Assembly (NCBI GenBank): GCA_001179505.1 | Contig: CDMY01000296.1 | Span: forward strand, 67,349-131,348 | Length of the DNA stretch: 64,000 nucleotides | Direction: 5' to 3' | Origin: Vitrella brassicaformis CCMP3155 | Lineage: Eukaryota; Protista; Chromerida | Shown here: piece by piece, positions 11,419 to 23,600 of the stretch | Numbering within the stretch: position 1 is the stretch's first letter | Layout: every line of letters starts with the position of its first letter | Made by a program: the position numbers and the translations under genes | The notes under the pieces: generated by a model | Told to the model about the DNA's origin: nothing | Database searches by the model: none | The model's input: the letters and a program-made list of their open reading frames with translations, nothing else

Positions 11419-12356
11419 TCACAGTTCGTCGTGTTCGCCTCCCTCCCACAGTAGGTGTTCTATGTCGTGCTGGATGGCCAGAGGGTCGGTCCGGTGGGTG
11501 TAGCGCTTGAACGGCCGGCCCTTCTTGTCTATCAGGAACTTCTCAAAGTTGTCCTGCTCGTTCACACAGCACAGCACGCCACGTGAGCCAACAGACAGAC
11601 ACAGACAGACAGACAGACTCATCCATGAGCTGGCGCGTGTTTGTTTTGCCTGTCTGGCTGTGTGCCTTCCTTCCCTCCCTCGTCGCTCCGTCGATTGACA
11701 GGTACCTGTATATCGTGCTTGCCGCAGTTGTCCGTGAGCCACTTGAAGACCAGGTGCTGGTCACGGCCCATGACGAGGTGCCTCTTGAGCATGGTAAACC
11801 TCGGCTCGACGCCCAGCGCGTCTTTGATGTCTTGGAGTATCTCGAGCCCCTCCTTGGGCTCCGACTTGTCGATCTGGTTGGTGGGAAATGCGAAGATGCG
11901 CAGACCTCGCGAGTGGTACTGGTCGTGCAGGTCGTTGAGCGCCTCGTACTGCTCCTTGGCGTGGGGGTCGCGGGTGGCGACTATCACACACAGAACTGGG
12001 TGGCCCTTGAACCTGCAATCACACACACACACACACACACACACACAACAGACAGCACAGCACAGCACAGCACGGCATCACTGCAGACCAGCCACGCGTG
12101 TCTGTCCCGGTGCATGCGGTGCATGAGATGGGATGGTCCTACAGCTGACTGACTCGTGGAATTCATGTATGTGTTCTCCGTCGATGTCGAAGAACATGTA
12201 GTGGCCGAGCTTGTGCCGCCGGTCCCACTTGCACTCCTCGCCAACGTCACCCTTCGGAGGGGGCGTGTTCGATAATGTCAGCCTCGGGAGCACCAGCAAC
12301 ACGCACACAATCGACACAAGCACCCTCGGGTGGGCAGCCCTTCTTCGTTTCATCAT
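11419..12356 (-). CDS. ER-resident glutathione peroxidase-like protein (GPx7/8-like fold) with degenerate catalytic site, C-terminal HDEL
   Basis: Three exons (12356-12154, 12012-11706, 11553-11419) give 214 aa. Signal peptide VLVSIVCVLLVLPRLTLS; GPx motifs QYEALNDLHDQY, GLRIFAFPTNQ, EP, HLVFKWL, NFEKFLIDKKG; ends EHDEL*. Confidence 0.9.
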
Positions 12357-12589: not shown

Positions 12590-15500
12590 ATGAAGGCAGC
12601 CGTCTTGGAATGTGGCGGTAGCGTCCGCGTGCGGTCTCTGAGCGGCATGGATGCACGAGAAGGCCGGCGACTGATTAGCCTGGCAAAGGAGAAGCCCAAA
12701 GAGGCGCTGGATGAGTGGCCAGAGGCGAAGCAACAGGTGAATGAGATTTCAATGAGTGAAACCTGTGCATGGAGGACAAGTGAATGGCATTCATGTACCT
12801 CTATTCCTGCAGGCGCTGTGCTATCACCTGTTGGATGTGTTGCGCGACGACGGCCCATCGATGTCATTCAGCCGCAGTGAAGAGCGCCTGCCCAAGCCCA
12901 CAGACACGTCGGACACCACCAGTCCTGCTCCACTAAGACTTTGCCTGCGGGATTTGTGGCCGGTGGTGCTCCGCTGCCTGGGGAGGCCGCCCACACACAT
13001 GAGTGAGTCGTCATCGATGGCCACAGTGGCCGTCAAGCTCTTGCAGAGGTGCGGTGCGTGCACACGACGTTGATTTAAGTACATTCATTCGTGGTGTTGT
13101 CGTTTCATTCATCAGGGACTCGGGATTCCTCCCCGCCCTGCTGTCGACATACCATCGGACGTCGTCCCCCGTCATTTTCATGGCGCTCAAGACACTGACC
13201 GACGAGGGCCACATACAGGTAGGTAGGTATGGACAGAGAGGCTCTCTCAGTGCAGTGGGACGGGTTGTCTCCCGTGTGGTGTGCATACCATAACATACAT
13301 GCAGGCCTTCCTGTCGATGTACTGTGCGGAGCTCCTTAAGGCCCACCCAAAGGCCAACGCGCGGGATCTTGGCAGTGGCCCACTGCCCTTCCTGCGTGTG
13401 GTGCCTTCAATCACAAATGCTATCGTACGTGGAAGGAGAGGAGCCGCTCAGCACAACACGTTTGGCATGCGTTTCGCGATTGAACCACTCAGGAATGTCA
13501 ACCGTCGCTTGAGTTTCCCACTACGGTGCTGCACCACATCGCCCAAATGATGCTGCTGAAGGATGGTGATGGCCCGCAGCCCCCCTCATCGTGTGGCGAG
13601 GGCCTCTCACAGCAGCTCGGTGCTCTACATGCACTCACTCTCCTGCTCCGGTACGTACAGGGGCACACCGAAAGAAAGGGGAGCCACAGCTTTTTTATTT
13701 CTATGTATGTGTGCCGCCGCTCTGTGCTCGCGAAGGTCACTGTGTCGTTGCCTGAGCCGCGTTAGTGCTGCCGCGTCCTTGTCGCCCGTCGAGCAATCAC
13801 ACCTGAACGTATGAATGCCGCTCGGCTATGTTGTCAGACACGGCACCAGACGTCAGTGTTCCGTCTTCTTCTTGTCTCAGGCCTGGAATTCGTTATGTCC
13901 CCTCGTCCCTTCCCTCATCGCCGCCCTCGTTGATCTGATGCCTGTGCTTCATCCCTTGACCCCACAGACCCCGCAGAGCGGCCCTTTCACCCTGGCTGAG
14001 TCAGACGAACAGCCACCGTCACCATCGACGGCCATGGCAGCAGCGAAGAAGGTGGTCCCGGAGATTTCTTTGACTTTGACGTCACCCGTGGCCCTGTTCG
14101 TGTCATCCTTGTACGCCCTACACCCATGGCCGACGCTTGAAGCGGTCCGCAGCAGTCCCTTATCTACCGCTGTCAGGGAGGCCGTCACCGGCATGCTGAC
14201 ACAGTGGCGCTTCCACGGCAACCTAATTCTCGGATATGTCGACGTTGCAAAGGACACCAAGAAGGGATCGGCGGAATGGGACGCCACCTCCCCCGACGTC
14301 CGCGAGCTGGCCTCATTCTGTGGTGACTTTGTCAAAACACTGGATGACTTCTTCTGCCTCCGACCCGAAGCCGCTCAAGAGTCCACACCCTCCACCCCGG
14401 TCAAGCGGGACCCCACCCCTCCCTCGCCCCCATCCAGCCAGCAGCCCACTTCCTGCGCGTCACCTCTGCTTGGCTTGATGGACTGGACCAGCTGGTTCTC
14501 GCCAAGGGGCGGTGTGTCTCCCATGAGGACCCGTGCAAGAGCGACCAATCGACGTCAGCTGCGGCACGGTGCCACGCCCTGGCTGCTCGACACAGAGGCC
14601 ATGGGTCAGAGCCTGAGCATGACACCACCAGCAGCTGTCGAGCGGGATCGACTGGTGGAGAGAAGGGAGTGTCCGGTCCTGTTTCTGGCCGAGAGTTGCT
14701 GTGCTGCGGCTCCGGGAGGGTTCGACGAGCACGAGATCCGGATTACCAGTGACGTGCATGAGCCGCGGCCACGTGTGCAGAGCCTGCCGTCGGCCAATCC
14801 CCCTCATGTCGAGGTGGCGGTCAAGTCCGCTTCGGCCCCTGACCTCTCAATCGAGCCGTCTGCCACCGCAAGTGCAAGACGGGACGTGGCTGAGCGTCGT
14901 GCATCGGCTGCTGCGCTCGCCCTGCACGCCCCCCTACCACCGCCAGTGTCCGATGGACGGTCAGTGAACCGCTTACAATCAGAGTCGGCCATGTCTGCCG
15001 TGACAGCTATCTACCGGGACAGTTCGACGCCCCCGCCACGTCCAGCCGACAACGAGAACGCAATGGAGGCTGTTTGTCGCGAGATGTCCCCGGATGGCCA
15101 TCGCAACAGCGACAAGAGCGAGTGGGTGCTGGAGCTGGAGACTGACAACGTGGAAGCAGCCCGCGTGGACTTCGACTCTCCAGAGTGGAAGGTCACTTCT
15201 GTCGTCGGACAGGAGGAGCAGGGACCGAGGCGCCAACCCACACCGAGGCGACCCCTGCCGCTTCTGACGCCGTCCTTCGGGCTGCCGGTCGTGTCGACCG
15301 TCCCGCCCCTCACAACAGCCTCAACCGCGCCTCTCACCCTGCACCCCATGCCGCCCTTCTCAATGGGCCTCCAGCCGTCCATGGCTCCCTTCATCCAGCC
15401 ATCCCCGCCATCACCCTCGTCCCCCCGTCCACCGGCATCATCGCCGTCATCCGACTCCCATCTGCGGCCGCCTAGTGCCGGCACCGGCCGTGAGGTGAGG

Positions 15501-18500
15501 CGCCGGGGCGTGCGGTCGGGTGTGCGGACGAGCAGCCAGGAGTCGATCAGCAGCCGTGGGAGCATGGTGGAAGGGGAGGACGCTACTGCCGCGGCTGCAG
15601 GGGCTGTGGGTGCGGCAGAGGGCATTTCGGATCAGCAGCCAGACCAGCAGCCCTCTGTGACCGACTTCTTCACCATGGCGAGGCGAGCGGCGGCACAGAA
15701 GGCCGCCACGCCTCCCACTCAGGCAGCAGGAATGTCACTGACTGGGATTAGGGCCTCAGTGTCCAGCTACGGATCATTCGGGTCATTGCCGCTCCGTGGA
15801 GCCGCTGTGGCATTTCAGCCAGTATCGCCGCTGCTGAGGCCATCGTCATCATCCCAGGCTGATTCGTCGGTGGCTACGCGAGGGAGAGTGAACGAGACGC
15901 GGACGTACCAGCTGGTGGATGACGAGTCGCGTTTCCAATCGTCGCGGTCGTCAAGGCGGGTGACGTTAGACATGATATCGGAGGGGCCTGGCGAAGGGGG
16001 AGAAGGGTCGGCGCAGCAGGCAGGTGGAGAGCGGTGAGTGTTTGCTGACTGACTGACTGAAAGGCTGTCGATTGTGGCTTTATGGATCTGTGTGGATAGC
16101 ATACCTTGGTGCACGTCGAGTGTTTCATTGGAATGTGTTGCATGCCGATGTAGATACATACAATGGGCCCGCGAGATTGATCGGAATGATCCCCCTAATG
16201 GGGGCCAGCAGGGGGCCGTTCTAACAAGCGAGCTTGCATGCATTTCGACGCGCGAAGGCGTAGCGACTCCCGACAGCCCGACGGTAGGAGGGAACTTCAT
16301 GGCGTCCGCCGGTGCTGTGGGCTTTGCCGACGCCATAGGCACTGTGGGGAAGGTGAGCGGTGGTCAAGGTGTCGCCGCAAGTGAGTTTGCAATGAGTCAC
16401 GCTTCTACGCGCCCCTCCATGGATGTGCCACGCCTTCCACCTGTGCCCGAGGAGGCCGACGCCGACGAAAACCCAAGCAGCCTGACGGCCATGCCAGTGG
16501 AAACCGATGAGGCTGCAAAGAATAGCGGTCCCGGCCAGAGGGGGCTGATGTCAAGGATCAAGGAGCTGGAGGACAAGTGCATGTATAGGACAATGACCAA
16601 TAAACGACGAAACACATGCACCACCCTACCTGTATGTCTCTCTCGTTGTAGGTCACTTCTGGAGGAGCGTGCCAGCATCCACGCCGACTGCCGCGTCAAG
16701 ATTGACCAAGGCAAGCAGGCCACTCAGCTGAGAACGCACGCACAGTCATTCGATATATCATCCCCTTCCTTCTTGTCGATCGAACGTCCTTCTGCAGAGG
16801 CGGCCAAATGGCAGGGTGCCTTGATGGAGTCGGTGGCCGCAAAGCATCGAGCGGAAGAGCGCCTCAATGTTATGGAGGAGGCACTCGCCTTGGCCCACGA
16901 GAAGCTGGAGAGGCGGGCGGGCGAGACCGGACCACCAATGCCAGCAGAGGGACCACAAACTAACGCAGGTGGGAGCCTTAAGGGAGCAGAGCCCGGCTCC
17001 TTGGGCACCGTCCCTGGCACACCCGGACCGGTCTGTCTGTCTCACCTCTCTGTCCCTGCAGAGAACGATCGTCTGCGTTGTCTTGTGCGTGAGCTCAAGT
17101 GTGCGCTCGAGGAGAAGGACATGTATGTATGTATGTATATATGTATGGCTATAGACGGGGGGGATTGCCTGCCTGATGGCCTGATGTATGTTTGTTGGTT
17201 TCTGTTTTCAGCCTCATCTCAAAGCTCAAGGCCGACAAGGACAAGTGAGCAGCAGACAGAGACAGACACATCATGCATGTGATCCCTCCCTCTTCATGGC
17301 TCTCTCTGCCCTCGTGCGTGTGTGCAGGCTGCTTCGTGTGCGCGTGCAGATGTCTCACAAGATGTTCAAGACCGAGACCGAGAAGCAGCAGACACTGCGG
17401 GACCTTGCCTATGCAAAGCAAGCCCTCAACTTCGCAGCAAAAAAGGTACTTGTGTGTACTCACACACAACACACTGGACGGCACAAACAAACCACTTTCT
17501 CCCACTGTCAGGGTCGAGAGTATCAGGAGAAGCTCAAGGACGTCATAGGCCTCGTCAAGGCAACCACCACCCCAGAGCTCACCACTTGTCCCCAGCAGCC
17601 GTCCGCCCTTGCCAGCCAGAAGACACCACGCCGCTCAGTGACCGCAGACTCACTGCCCAGCACACTCAAGCTTACGGACCGAAAGACGAGCAAGACGAAC
17701 ATACACCAAGAGCTGATTGCTACACGCCCAGGAGTCGACACGTCCCATCTCGACAGCATACATCTTGAGGGTCATGCCGATGCCGATGCGCCATTCTTCT
17801 TCCCCGCGCCCCGGCTCCGTCTCTCAGGCAGTGTCCGGCGGGAGGACATGCCACAGACCATCACCCAAATGAACGGCAAGGCCGCCTCGCCGCGCGATGA
17901 TGAGGCGGCGGATGACGAGACGGCATTCCAGTCGTCGGCTGCCGCTGATGCTGACGACCAGGGAGAGGGAGACATGGACAACGACAGCCATGAGCAGGAC
18001 GAGCAAGGGAAGGGGCCAGAAGAGGCGGAGGGCAAGGACGGCCCTGCACTCTCGCCGCTGGAGAGCCGGTGCTCGTCGAGACAAAATCTACCCAATGTGC
18101 CGCCGTCGGCCAGCAAACGAAGCAGGAGCGTCTGCCCAATGCCGGTTGCCATCACCAAGGCAGCAACCTCTTTCCTGCAACCGACAGCAGCAGCGTCAGC
18201 AGCCGTGCGCCGGTCTGTCTCGTGCGCCCCAGTGTGTATCAGCTCACCCGCGGCCTCACCCCGGACACCGCTCTGCTACTACGTCCCACAAACAGCCAAC
18301 AAAGTGTGGGCCAAGTCTGTCCACCACCTGCCGAGGGCGGTGCCTGTATGTCGGCTGGCCTCCGCCCCGTGCACTCCCCGGCTGCAGGTGTATCCGCGAA
18401 TGCCCCTGCCGCCAGCACAAGCGGGACAGAGAAGCCTGTCTGCCCACCCCGCCCTCCGCAGCGTATTCTGCCTGACCTCCCCACGGCCCCCTGTCGGCCA

Positions 18501-18699
18501 CACACACAGGGCGATCCCAAGAGGCCTGGCATTGTGTGTGTCGCCGCGTGCGCGGCTAGTCCAGCCTGTGAGTGGTGTGGGCGTGGGTGTGGGTGGTGGT
18601 GGTGGTGTGCGGGCCCACTCGCCCATGGTGCAGGCGCCGGGCAGGGCAGTGAGTGCAAGTGAGGAATCGGACAGGGGCCGGTGGTCACGGCATGTGTGA
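12590..18699 (+). CDS. TSC1: TSC1/hamartin-like protein (hamartin N-terminal domain, long Ser/Pro-rich region, C-terminal coiled-coils)
   Basis: Exon peptides LLSTYHRTSSPVIFMALKTLTDEGHIQAFL and LFVSSLYALHPWPTLEAVRS...VTGMLTQWRFHGNLILG...W...DVRELASFC align in order with recalled hamartin segments. Coiled-coils MSRIKELEDK...AHEKLERR, ENDRLRCLVRELK and EKQQTLRDLAYAKQAL...EYQEKLKD follow. Gene symbol is provisional. Confidence 0.7.
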
Positions 18700-19230: not shown

Positions 19231-20352
19231 CTAGTAGTAGGACCCGTCAGCCTTGCCCTGTGCGTCCAGCAGCCCCTTCCAATAGTTCTTCTCGAAATTG
19301 GCCTTTGTGTTTGAGTCGACGAGGACCTCGATGGTGCGGCCGCGCTGCCTGACGGGGAATGTGGCAAGGTTCTGTGGCGGCCTGAGCTTGCCGGTGAGGG
19401 GGCCGACGAGGGGCGGGAAGGGGCACCACTCGCCCACCACCTCGCCCTTCTCGAGCGAGAAGGCCGTGCGGTGCAGCGGACAGATGACCTTGCCGTCCTT
19501 GACCTCGCCCTGCTCCAGGGGCGTGCCGATGTGCGGACACACGTTGGCCACGCAGTAGATGCTGCCGTCCGTGTCGGCTACCAGCAGCAGATTCAGTCCA
19601 TTCACCTAGGTGACGACAGTCACACCGACGCGACAGAAAAACAAGTTCGGGGGGGGCGAGAGAGAACTCGTGTGTGTGCCGTGCCCGCACTCACCTGGAC
19701 AGGCACGAGGTCGCCCGCAGCGATCTCGTCATCGTTGAGCACCGCTTTCCACTCCTGAGCCTGTATGGATGGCCAGACGCAGCATTGGTGAATCAATCGT
19801 CACACCCATCCACCCACCCGGCCTCCCGCCAATCAAGGTCGGTCGCCTACCGTCGTTGTCTTGCCGCCGAACACAGCTTGGAGGCTTGTACGAGGGGCAT
19901 GGCGCTGACAGACAAACACACACACACACACACACACACACGGCGTCACTCACTGTCCTGTTTGCCCCCTATGGTGTGCGGTATGGATGTGGTGTGATGC
20001 CCACCGCCTGATAGAGTGAAGGTGAGACGCCCAGTTGGCCCGCGTCAGACACGACCAGGGAGGCGCGCTGCGTGAGGCAGGGGGGAGGCGACACGAAACC
20101 CAAGCCGCCACGCATACGCGCACCGCTGCACAGACCTGCAACCACACTCACAGATACTTGCACATGGCAGCAGCCTGGCCTGGCTGTGGTGGTGTGCGTC
20201 TCGTCTGGCTGCCCATATTCCCCTTTGGTCTGTCTGCCCCGTGCCCCATCCTTGCTTGTCTCTCTGGTGCCCGTCCGTAGATCAGATCATGAACTTCTCA
20301 TCTACGTACCTGCGGCCAACGCCGCGACCAGCAAGTGGCAGACGCACTTCAT
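19231..20352 (-). CDS. Plastid-targeted Rieske [2Fe-2S] ferredoxin-type protein
   Basis: Five exons. Bipartite presequence MKCVCHLLVAALAAGLCSG-ARMRGGLGFVSPP; Rieske ligands CPH...CPLH intact; C-terminus NFEKNYWKGLLDAQGKADGSYY. Confidence 0.9.
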
Positions 20353-20624
20353 TCTCGCAGACCACAGGCGAGTTCTAAAGTGAAAAATCAATCGGCGCAC
20401 TTCGCTGCTTTCCCCTTCCGCTAAGCTCGCAGATGCCGGGAAACGTGGCGAAAACAGCCGGAAAGAAGGGTAAGAGCGGCGGCACGAGTGGGTGCTTGTT
20501 GATTGATGCTCTGTGGACAGAGCGGTTCGATTCATCGTCATCACCACCTCAGCATTGCCACCACCTGACCTGAGCCGTGTCCCGACGCCGTGTCCCCGTC
20601 GGCAGTACGTGCGCATCGCCCGCC

Positions 20625-23600
20625 ATGGCTGAGGAGGGCATGATGAGCTTCAGCATGGAGGGCGACTTTGAGGGCGGTGAGTTCGACGAGCAGGGGGAAT
20701 TCTGGTTCCGCAGCAAGAAGCAGAAGAAGCGGCTGTCCAAGGAGCAGGCCATCTACGGCGTCTTTTACGACGAGGCGGCGAGTTCTGACGAGGAGGACAA
20801 GAGCTACAAGCGCCGCAAGATGGCCGAGGTGGGCAGTGCGGTTCGGTTCGTGTCCAAGGGTTCCGTCGGCGGCACCATCCATGAGACCACCAAGCCGCAA
20901 ACACGACCGTCGCCATCACCGCTCAACCCGGACCAGGACAGCGAGCCAGAAGAGGACACCGACGGGCAGCCGCCAGAGGGAGAGGAGGACCGTGGTGGTG
21001 GTGGTGGTGAGCAGCGGGAGGATGAAGACGATGACGAGATCGATCCACGGTTTCAGTTCAAGGACAAGTCCGCTGCGGAGGAGGGTGTGGATTCGGCTGC
21101 TGATGCGGCGGGTGGGTCGAAGCAGAAGCACACGTGGGGTCAGCAGAAGATGAGCAAGGAGTACGGCGTGGGGTTCAAGCTGCTGCAGAAGATGGGATAC
21201 AAGGGAGGCGGACTGGGCAAGGGCGGATCAGGTAGACAAACACGGATGGATGGATGGATGGATGGATGGCTGCACACACAGATGTTTATGTCTGCTCTGT
21301 CTGTCTGTCTGTCTGTCCTGCCTGCAGGCCGCGTCAACCCCGTGGAGGTCCGGCTCCGCCAGAAGGGCCGCGCCCTGCAGGACACAGGCGAGAAGATCCA
21401 CGAGAACGAGCACGACGGCCACAAGCCGCCCACCAAGTCGGCCGTCGAGATCCTCCTGGGCAGCGGCGACAAGGCGGGCGCCTCGTCCGACCGCACCAAG
21501 GTGTCCGACGGCTGGAAAGCCAGCCGTGGCAAGAAGGGCGGCCCCAAGAAGGTCTACCGCACTGTGGCCGAGATAGCCGAGGAGACCAGGGGCGCGCCGG
21601 GGGTACTGGGTGAGGCGGTTGGAGCGGGCAGGTCGTCCTCGATGAGGATATTGGACATGACGGGGCCCGAGGCCAGGGTGCTGGACGCATCGGCGGGGGT
21701 CGGTGGGGTGACGGTCGCCCCCGTCGCCGTCGCCAAGGAAGACGAGAAGCTGCCACTCAAGGCAAGAGTTCACGATCGACGGATGCGAGCGAACAGAGAG
21801 GCACAGCACATCCATGTGTGTCGGTGCGTCTTGCCATGCATGCAGGAGCTTCGATACAACCTTCGCGTGACGGTGCTAGCGCTCGAGAGGGAGGTCATGT
21901 CGGTGGCCCGCGACAGGAAGCAGCAGCAGGACGCCCTCCTCAACATGTCACACGAGAAGGAACAGCTGGCAAAGGGCGCAGAGATGATCGAGGACGAAGC
22001 CATCCACATGGAGGCCATCCTCGACCGGCTCTCGGGCTGCAAGGTCCGCCTCGCCGACGGCACCATGTCGCTCGCCGAGCTGACCAGCGAGTTCCGGCAG
22101 ATACAGAGGGACTACCCCCACGAGTACGTCGCCCACAGCATCCCAGCCGTCGGCCTTTCCTTCGTATTCCCGGCTTTGCGGGCCGTCTACCAGGACTGGC
22201 AGCCGCTCGCCGACCCGACACGCGGCGTGGCTGAGCTGCAGCAGTGGGCGGGGCTGTGTGGGGCCGAGGGGCTGGCGCGTGTGACGGACGAGCTGATAGT
22301 GCCGTGCATCCGCTCGTGCGTCACCAATGTGTGGCTGGTGCGTGAGGTGGAGGGTATGGTGAAGCTGGTGGAGAGCTGGCAGCCACTCCTCCCTGTCGGC
22401 GTCTTCCAATCGCTGCTCACCGAGGGCATCCTGCCCAGACTAGTGGCCGAGGTGAGGCAGGGGGGGAGGAAAGGCAGGCAGAAACATTGCCGTGTCGGTC
22501 GATGGATTTGTGTGTGGATTGGATTGGATCGGTTCTATATGATCGGTCAGGTTGAGGCGTGGAATCCACGGACGGACCCCGTGCCCATCCACACGTGGGT
22601 GCATCCGTGGCTGCCCATCATGGGCCCCCTCCTTGAGGGACTGTGGGCACCCATCCGATTCAAAGTTGCCCTATGCCTGCAGCACTGGCACCCTGCTGAC
22701 AGGTACGGTGGATGCGGGGCGGGGCGCATGTGAGTGTGCACACGTTGCGGGAGGGAGTCGATCGATCTGATCTACTTGATGTGCTGTGCTGTGCGTGAGT
22801 GTGTGCAGGTCAGCGGTTCACATGCTGAAGCCGTGGCGCGACGTGATGGATGCGGCCAACTGGGGGCAGCTGATGCTCAGGAGCGTCATGCCCAAACTCA
22901 GAGACCAACTCACCACCATGCAGGTCAGTCAGTCAGTCAGCTGAGTCAGCTGAGCTGACGGCCACAGATGAAGGGAGAGATGGATATCATGATCGACGTC
23001 TCCCTCTCCTCTCTGTGTGTGTATGTCAGGTTCGGCCCGACAGTCAGTCGCTAGCGCCGCTGCAGAACGTCTTTGCGTGGCTGGATGTGGCCCCGCTTGA
23101 CGCCATCGTGGCCCTACTCGAGACGCACTTCATCCCGCAATGGCTGCAGGTACAATAGGCGGCCGACACAATGCATTCAATGGAGCGAGAGGTCACGCTT
23201 GCTCCCGCCCCCTTGTCTGTCTGTCTGTCTGTCTGTGTCTTTTTTCTCTCTTGTCGCTGCAGGCGCTTCAGGTGTGGATCAGCACGCCCGGCGCGGACCC
23301 CGAGGAGATGATGAAGTGGTACCAGGGGTGGAAGACCGTCTTCCCCGAGGCACTCCTCACACAGCCACGCATCCAGCAGGGCTTCATGCAAGCCGTCCAC
23401 ATGATGAAGGCATTCGCCACACAATCCACCACACCACCAGCGGCCCCTCCCCCTCCCCCTCCCCCGCCCCCGTCCGAGCCGCCCCCTCCCACCCCCGAGG
23501 ACCGCCTGGCTGCAGCGTCGTTCCGCGAGTATTTGGAGCAGGTTGCCAGCGAGAATGACCTGTTGATGCGGCCCAAGGTTGGGCGGATTGTGAATGGGAA

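Follow-up and report, generated by a model that had tools for sequence, protein, structure and literature searches.

The window considered here is a stretch of 64,000 nucleotides from the genome of the chromerid Vitrella brassicaformis CCMP3155 (GenBank assembly GCA_001179505.1, contig CDMY01000296.1, positions 67,349 to 131,348 of the forward strand). Our data suggest that a gene on its + strand, at window positions 12647-18699, probably codes for a very divergent hamartin (TSC1) homologue. Its product, a protein of 1663 aa (CEM00672.1 / UniProt A0A0G4ERZ2, here P0001), came up when the leading 190 codons of exon 7 were used as the query of an exhaustive HMMER search; it is 100% identical over that piece and maps exactly onto the window in 14 exons. 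That P0001 is an alveolate TSC1 is probable rather than proven. In that case a known family would gain a new member, one that a database has already labelled automatically and for which we found no publication that describes it.

Domain organization

A first-pass annotation, made by a model from the DNA letters, had claimed for this gene the layout of TSC1, with an N-terminal part, a disordered middle and C-terminal coiled coils. Amino acid composition and the helices of AlphaFold2 (AF2) models bear this out. The predicted parts of the protein are as follows.

12954-14375, + strand: helical-repeat (HEAT-like) N-terminal domain, residues ~78-425, exons 2-7; all-helical in the AF2 model
14376-16529, + strand: disordered Ser/Pro-rich linker, residues 426-1103, interrupted by intron 7; from composition, with an AF2 predicted local distance difference test (pLDDT) score <50 from residue 426 on
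16530-17565, + strand: coiled-coil region, residues 1104-1286, exons 8-14; two long helices parted by a Pro/Gly break in the AF2 model
17566-18696, + strand: disordered C-terminal tail, residues 1287-1663 (~375 residues), acidic and then Pro/Ala/Ser-rich; from composition

Serine, proline, threonine, glycine and glutamine together account for 30-64% of the residues in each stretch of 50 in the linker. The two coiled-coil helices (1104-1183 and 1193-1286) are modelled with pLDDT ~80 and heptad-like spacing, and the hydrophobic occupancy of their a/d positions is 0.5-0.88 vs 0.40 overall. This region has a weak Pfam match to KIF21A_4th (expectation value, E, 0.015), and a fold search with its model returned generic, unspecific coiled-coil hairpins only. 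The tail at 1287-1663 has no Pfam family. In TSC1, a coiled coil that carries TSC2 comes after a long disordered linker, and the same succession is present here (426-1103, then 1104-1286); binding of a TSC2 protein by this part is predicted at most.

The order of the parts is that of human TSC1 as seen in Protein Data Bank (PDB) entry 9CE3, namely an N-terminal HEAT-repeat domain, a long disordered linker, a coiled coil and a disordered tail. The proportions differ. In comparison with the human protein, the Vitrella helical domain is ~150 residues longer and has inserted loops, whereas its coiled coil has fewer residues (~180) and is interrupted by a Pro/Gly stretch; the linker has ~680 residues and the tail ~375. 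Generic scaffolds built of HEAT or armadillo (ARM) repeats, such as MO25, CRM1 and beta-catenin, are without this combination of linker and coiled coil.

Motif blocks in the helical domain

The first-pass annotation had also named two blocks resembling hamartin motifs. Both are present on the + strand and in the claimed order, at positions that follow from the mapping of P0001.

13150-13212, + strand: motif block 1, YHRTSSPVIFMALKTLTDEGH, residues 121-141, exon 3
14109-14279, + strand: motif block 2, LYALHP ... VRS ... MLTQWRFHGNLILG ... W393, residues 337-393, exon 7

For scoring we used the strings that had been quoted with the claim, which are hamartin motifs as given in the first-pass annotation. 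The composite score for block 2 asks for LYGMYP, for LRS 10-14 residues further on and for MMEHVRIHPELVTG 24-40 residues further on. It reaches 58 at residues 337/365, where 3000 shuffles of residues 1-450 give a mean of 23.4, a standard deviation of 4.5 and a maximum of 45, and where the best of 264 other six-frame chunks from the window scores 39. The composite score overstates the case because the statistic was chosen after the match had been seen. Judged from the sequence, the local resemblance of block 2 to the quoted motifs is real, measured with a statistic picked post hoc.

Block 1 has an ungapped score of 20 against the quoted string, which is the best place in residues 1-450, yet alone this is at chance level; within the whole of P0001, the best local match of that string falls outside block 1. 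Block 1 lies in the best-modelled stretch of the helical domain, the one that aligns to chain 9ce3_C (see below). In both the Vitrella and the human protein (PMC11578170), block 2 is placed at the C-terminal end of the helical part, immediately ahead of the linker. Its presumed counterpart in human TSC1 is the stretch of the HEAT-repeat dimer interface and the phosphoinositide pocket, and this location of an ordered motif block speaks for the homology.

Fold comparison

Residues 1-450 were modelled with single-sequence AlphaFold2. The model is poor, with a mean pLDDT of 46 and values of 57-67 at residues 75-140. In a fold search with this poor model, 9ce3_C ranked 1st of 48,161 chains and had by far the best root-mean-square deviation (rmsd) and identity. 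The alignments cover residues 6-120 and 6-218 of 9ce3_C, which belong to its HEAT-repeat domain. By contrast, the generic scaffolds MO25, CRM1 and beta-catenin match the Vitrella model much worse, with rmsd 5.5-7.3 A and identity 8-11%. As a control, the top 50 of the search with the coiled-coil model were inspected and do not contain 9ce3_C, which therefore is no general attractor for helical models.

The fold alignment starts at residue 78 of the Vitrella protein and residue 6 of 9ce3_C, an offset of 72. On the human TSC1 numbering adopted here, Y121 of block 1 presumably has its partner in human Y49, again an offset of 72 and equal to the start offset of the fold alignment. When the same model was compared with the PDB by Foldseek, nothing was found at E<=0.001; armadillo and HEAT proteins were listed, with 9ce3_D 32nd. 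The structure in entry 9CE3, that of the human TSC:WIPI3 complex, was the first to resolve the N-terminal HEAT-repeat dimer of TSC1 (PMC11578170).

For the hamartin identity put forward in the first-pass annotation, the outcome is divided. On the profile side it found no backing, since neither Pfam nor phmmer gave a TSC1 match, whereas the structural side is pointed but weak, with 9ce3_C as the top match of a poor model.

Evidence against TSC1 and the possibility of an unrelated scaffold

A number of results weigh against a hamartin identity, and sequence searches are foremost among them. The Hamartin profile (PF04388) has no match at E<=10 in hmmscan searches of Pfam-A with single exons, with whole P0001, or with residues 1-450 and 1000-1663, so the Pfam comparison of the N-terminal region that had been proposed along with the original identification came back empty; as HMMER filters hide matches above ~E 0.1, this negative means not significant, rather than dissimilar. 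No TSC1 chain was among the phmmer matches of five queries to 177,635 distinct PDB sequences (E<=10). Residues 261-450, searched exhaustively with HMMER in 1.84 billion cluster representatives, brought up no relatives, and three word-index searches that covered different length ranges (with exon 7, with region 1-450 of P0001, and with region 1-450 of P0001:1-750) returned the protein itself only. A scan of metagenome contigs yielded no relative. Likewise, neither the database searches, of which the exhaustive one covered residues 261-450, nor the metagenome contigs yielded an orthologue from the related Chromera, dinoflagellates or perkinsids. Two sets of matches were set aside in the course of these searches. 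Those of phmmer in the PDB (EscN, designed armadillo repeats and an outer-membrane protein) are due to chance, and the two repeat proteins that the exhaustive search listed besides the protein itself are spurious.

Further points concern the motifs and the fold. In a six-frame translation of the window, equal or better matches to the single motifs occur elsewhere (better chance matches were found for the first and third quoted strings), which places each motif alone at chance level. None of the other TSC entries appears in the top 50 of the fold search, and this includes the domain of fission yeast Tsc1, with whose core a comparison had been proposed as a check of the identification. Moreover, that 9ce3_C is human TSC1 is itself something that we infer, from its 616 resolved residues (581 in the twin chain D) and from the alignment over 6-218.

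The sites that matter in human TSC1 are kept in part. By the numbering adopted here, we take block 2 to be the counterpart of human TSC1 residues 191-247. In an alignment made from the quoted strings and the human sequence, R350 of the VRS motif presumably pairs with human R204, so that the arginine is kept. T367 and V380 presumably stand at the places of human E225 and K238, and the partners of R204 are not kept; of what is described for the human protein, the salt bridge would therefore be lost, and so would one half of the pocket. The numbering adopted here gives R204, E225 and K238, the very residues named in the work on 9CE3. There, human residues 197-237 are the HEAT-repeat dimer interface, with R204:E225 salt bridges, and monophosphorylated phosphoinositides bind in a pocket lined by R204 and K238 (PMC11578170).

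The linker has a candidate site of its own.

14481-14498, + strand: D-W-T-S-W-F, residues 461-466, candidate WIPI-interacting (WIR-like) motif; found post hoc

This Trp-aromatic motif resembles the human WIR motif, whose key residues are W676, H678 and F679 and which binds WIPI3 (PMC11578170). P0001 has no other site of this kind, and the pattern D-W-[ST]-(x)-aromatic occurs in 0.34% of linker shuffles, a frequency to be read with the post hoc choice of the pattern in mind. In the Vitrella motif the histidine is replaced by serine, and the site is far from the coiled coil.

P0001 is an 'unnamed protein product' at NCBI and 'Hamartin' in UniRef; the latter name, given independently, favours TSC1 but is automatic, an unverified opinion that we did not count as a test. 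It must come from another automatic source, because Pfam Hamartin gives no match. Presumably it goes back to a PANTHER match, which coiled coil and low complexity can drive, or to a name given by a language model, origins that would lessen its weight for TSC1. As it stands, the UniRef label on P0001 is a database name that is not reproducible with standard profiles.

Taken by themselves, these results speak for another explanation, in which P0001 is a lineage-specific scaffold of HEAT-like repeats, disordered linker and coiled coil that is unrelated to TSC1, and in which the motifs, the fold match and the name reflect coincidence or generic architecture. Every sequence and profile test is negative, there are no relatives anywhere we searched, as would fit a fast-evolving orphan, and each motif is singly at chance level. 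Language-model feature and fold searches of the ESM Atlas found assorted generic HEAT/TPR families only, not hamartin. Nevertheless, we consider this explanation unlikely. It has to accept as an accident that a family named beforehand ranked first among the 48,161 chains, with the best rmsd and identity by a wide margin, and that the composite score of block 2 is far outside its shuffles. The register of the fold match also coincides with the one predicted by the motifs on the human numbering adopted here. Finally, an unrelated scaffold would not be expected to have block 2 at the end of the helical domain and before the linker, like human TSC1 (PMC11578170).

TSC1 outside opisthokonts

Published surveys disagree about the age of the family. 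TSC1 has been described as an animal-fungal (opisthokont) invention by van Dam et al. (PMC3236823). Tatebe and Shiozaki report a sporadic distribution, with TSC1 in Acanthamoeba castellanii (Amoebozoa) and in the oomycete Aphanomyces invadans, and point out that poor sequence conservation makes TSC1 hard to identify outside opisthokonts (PMC5745459). Its presence in Amoebozoa and in the group of stramenopiles, alveolates and Rhizaria (SAR) (PMC5745459) means that the family is older than opisthokonts and therefore contradicts the conclusion of van Dam et al. (PMC3236823). With a chromerid TSC1, alveolates would join the list.

The Acanthamoeba castellanii and Aphanomyces invadans proteins were found by BLAST and Pfam (PMC5745459), whereas the Vitrella protein was not found in this way, and between it and human TSC1 there is no detectable sequence or profile similarity. 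On sequence grounds, the usual presence-absence methods would score P0001 as 'no TSC1'. If P0001 is a TSC1, then standard presence-absence tables built with Pfam or BLAST undercount the family, and the chromerid protein supports an ancient origin followed by losses. It would also offer a point of comparison, from a free-living organism, for how TOR signalling was taken apart in apicomplexan parasites. According to a survey from 2025, TORC1 and TORC2 are both kept in Vitrella and were both lost by apicomplexan parasites (PMC12467227).

A search of a literature library found no paper that links TSC1 with Chromera and none that cites A0A0G4ERZ2. The 'TSC2' of a Toxoplasma paper is a suture protein and unrelated.

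A possible role in restraining TORC1

The human complex (PMC11578170, PMC5745459) offers, by analogy, a model for the function of P0001. Its HEAT-repeat domain would dimerize and would dock on membranes via phosphoinositides. The coiled coil would pair with and stabilize a Rap-GAP protein of the TSC2 type, which in turn would switch off a Rheb-type GTPase, so that TORC1 is restrained. Again judging by the human complex, a protein of the PROPPIN/WIPI family may bind the linker at D-W-T-S-W-F.

This leads to a bolder proposal, which we put forward tentatively and hold to be less probable than the homology as such: Vitrella may keep a working TSC1-TSC2-Rheb brake on TORC1, with a TSC1 that is beyond the reach of profiles yet still has the block for the dimer and lipid pocket and the WIPI-binding motif. 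If it does, TSC1 and its recruitment to membranes would be at least as old as the ancestor that SAR, Amoebozoa and opisthokonts share, and would have been lost together with TOR en route to the parasitic apicomplexans. The 'missing' TSC1 of other protists that have TSC2 may then be hidden by divergence. The gain in knowledge is incremental all the same, since the family and the mechanism are known and a public database already names the protein 'Hamartin', and the functional claim depends on TSC2 and Rheb.

Gene structure and transcripts

The gene is real, spliced and transcribed. Read on the + strand, it consists of short exons with GT..AG borders, one exon of 2.1 kb and seven more.

12590-12646, + strand: possible N-terminal extension, 19 codons from an upstream in-frame ATG; a reading of the sequence with no RNA coverage, the annotated start being 12647
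12647-12736, 12813-13048, 13116-13218, 13305-13424, 13493-13650, 13736-13808 and 13881-16033, + strand: exons 1-7, from the mapping of P0001
16034-16153, + strand: intron 7, 120 nt, GTGAGT..TAG, possibly retained in part of the transcripts
16154-16582, 16652-16710, 16798-16968, 17062-17122, 17212-17244, 17328-17445 and 17512-18699, + strand: exons 8-14, from the mapping of P0001
16711-16797, + strand: GC-AG intron with donor GCAAGC, demanded by the reading frame of P0001; no RNA-contig coverage
18697-18699, + strand: stop codon TGA

The first-pass annotation had placed the gene at 12590-18699. The end agrees with the stop codon, whereas the start corresponds to the in-frame ATG that lies 19 codons upstream of the annotated 12647. 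Twelve introns are of the GT-AG type and one is GC-AG. Contigs of the RNA type from one public run (X1) contain five GT..AG joints (13425-13492, 13651-13735, 13809-13880, 16969-17061 and 17446-17511), from which it follows that the gene is transcribed and spliced. The stretch 12590-18699 lies in sequence rich in guanine and cytosine (53-66%), and two DNA runs carry it unbroken.

Intron 7 is a special case. Contigs of both RNA-type runs cross the exon-7 donor (X1 at 15767-16094, X2 at 15643-16117), and no contig that bridges exons 7 and 8 is found among the RNA-type contigs of X1 and X2. Were the intron retained, an in-frame TGA at 16035-16037 would limit the protein to 978 residues and cut off the coiled coil. 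The intron also contains a (CTGA)4 repeat (16041-16056). RNA folding around the donor shows nothing unusual (z 0.34). The contigs that enter intron 7 may come from RNA that was not spliced, from a real short isoform or from an effect of the repeat on the assembly.

If the isoform is real, the gene might have two products, or chiefly the short one: transcripts that retain intron 7 would encode a 978-residue protein without the coiled coil, and the coiled-coil exons might belong to a separate transcript. This question concerns the gene model and is compatible both with a TSC1 identity and with an unrelated scaffold. The contigs of both runs that pass the donor (to 16094 in X1, to 16117 in X2) without a bridge to exon 8 are what one would expect from a short product, but we regard it as distinctly improbable, because the contigs are short, their depth is low and reads are cut at the (CTGA)4 repeat, because exons 7 and 8 are in frame across a GTGAGT..TAG intron in the public model, because exon 8 is open upstream with its first obvious start codon well inside it, and because pre-mRNA left unspliced would give the same picture.

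Neighbouring genes

The genes on either side encode recognizable domains. Just upstream, on the - strand, is an exon of the glutathione peroxidase type (11619-12068; PF00255, E 1.5e-16). Directly downstream, and also on the strand opposite to the gene, lies an exon with a Rieske [2Fe-2S] domain (19231-19605, - strand; PF00355, E 1.8e-13). It is followed on the + strand by an open frame of 718 codons (20577-22733) that combines TIP_N, G-patch and GCFC domains (E 1.6e-36), which is the make-up of the spliceosome-disassembly factor TFIP11/Spp382.

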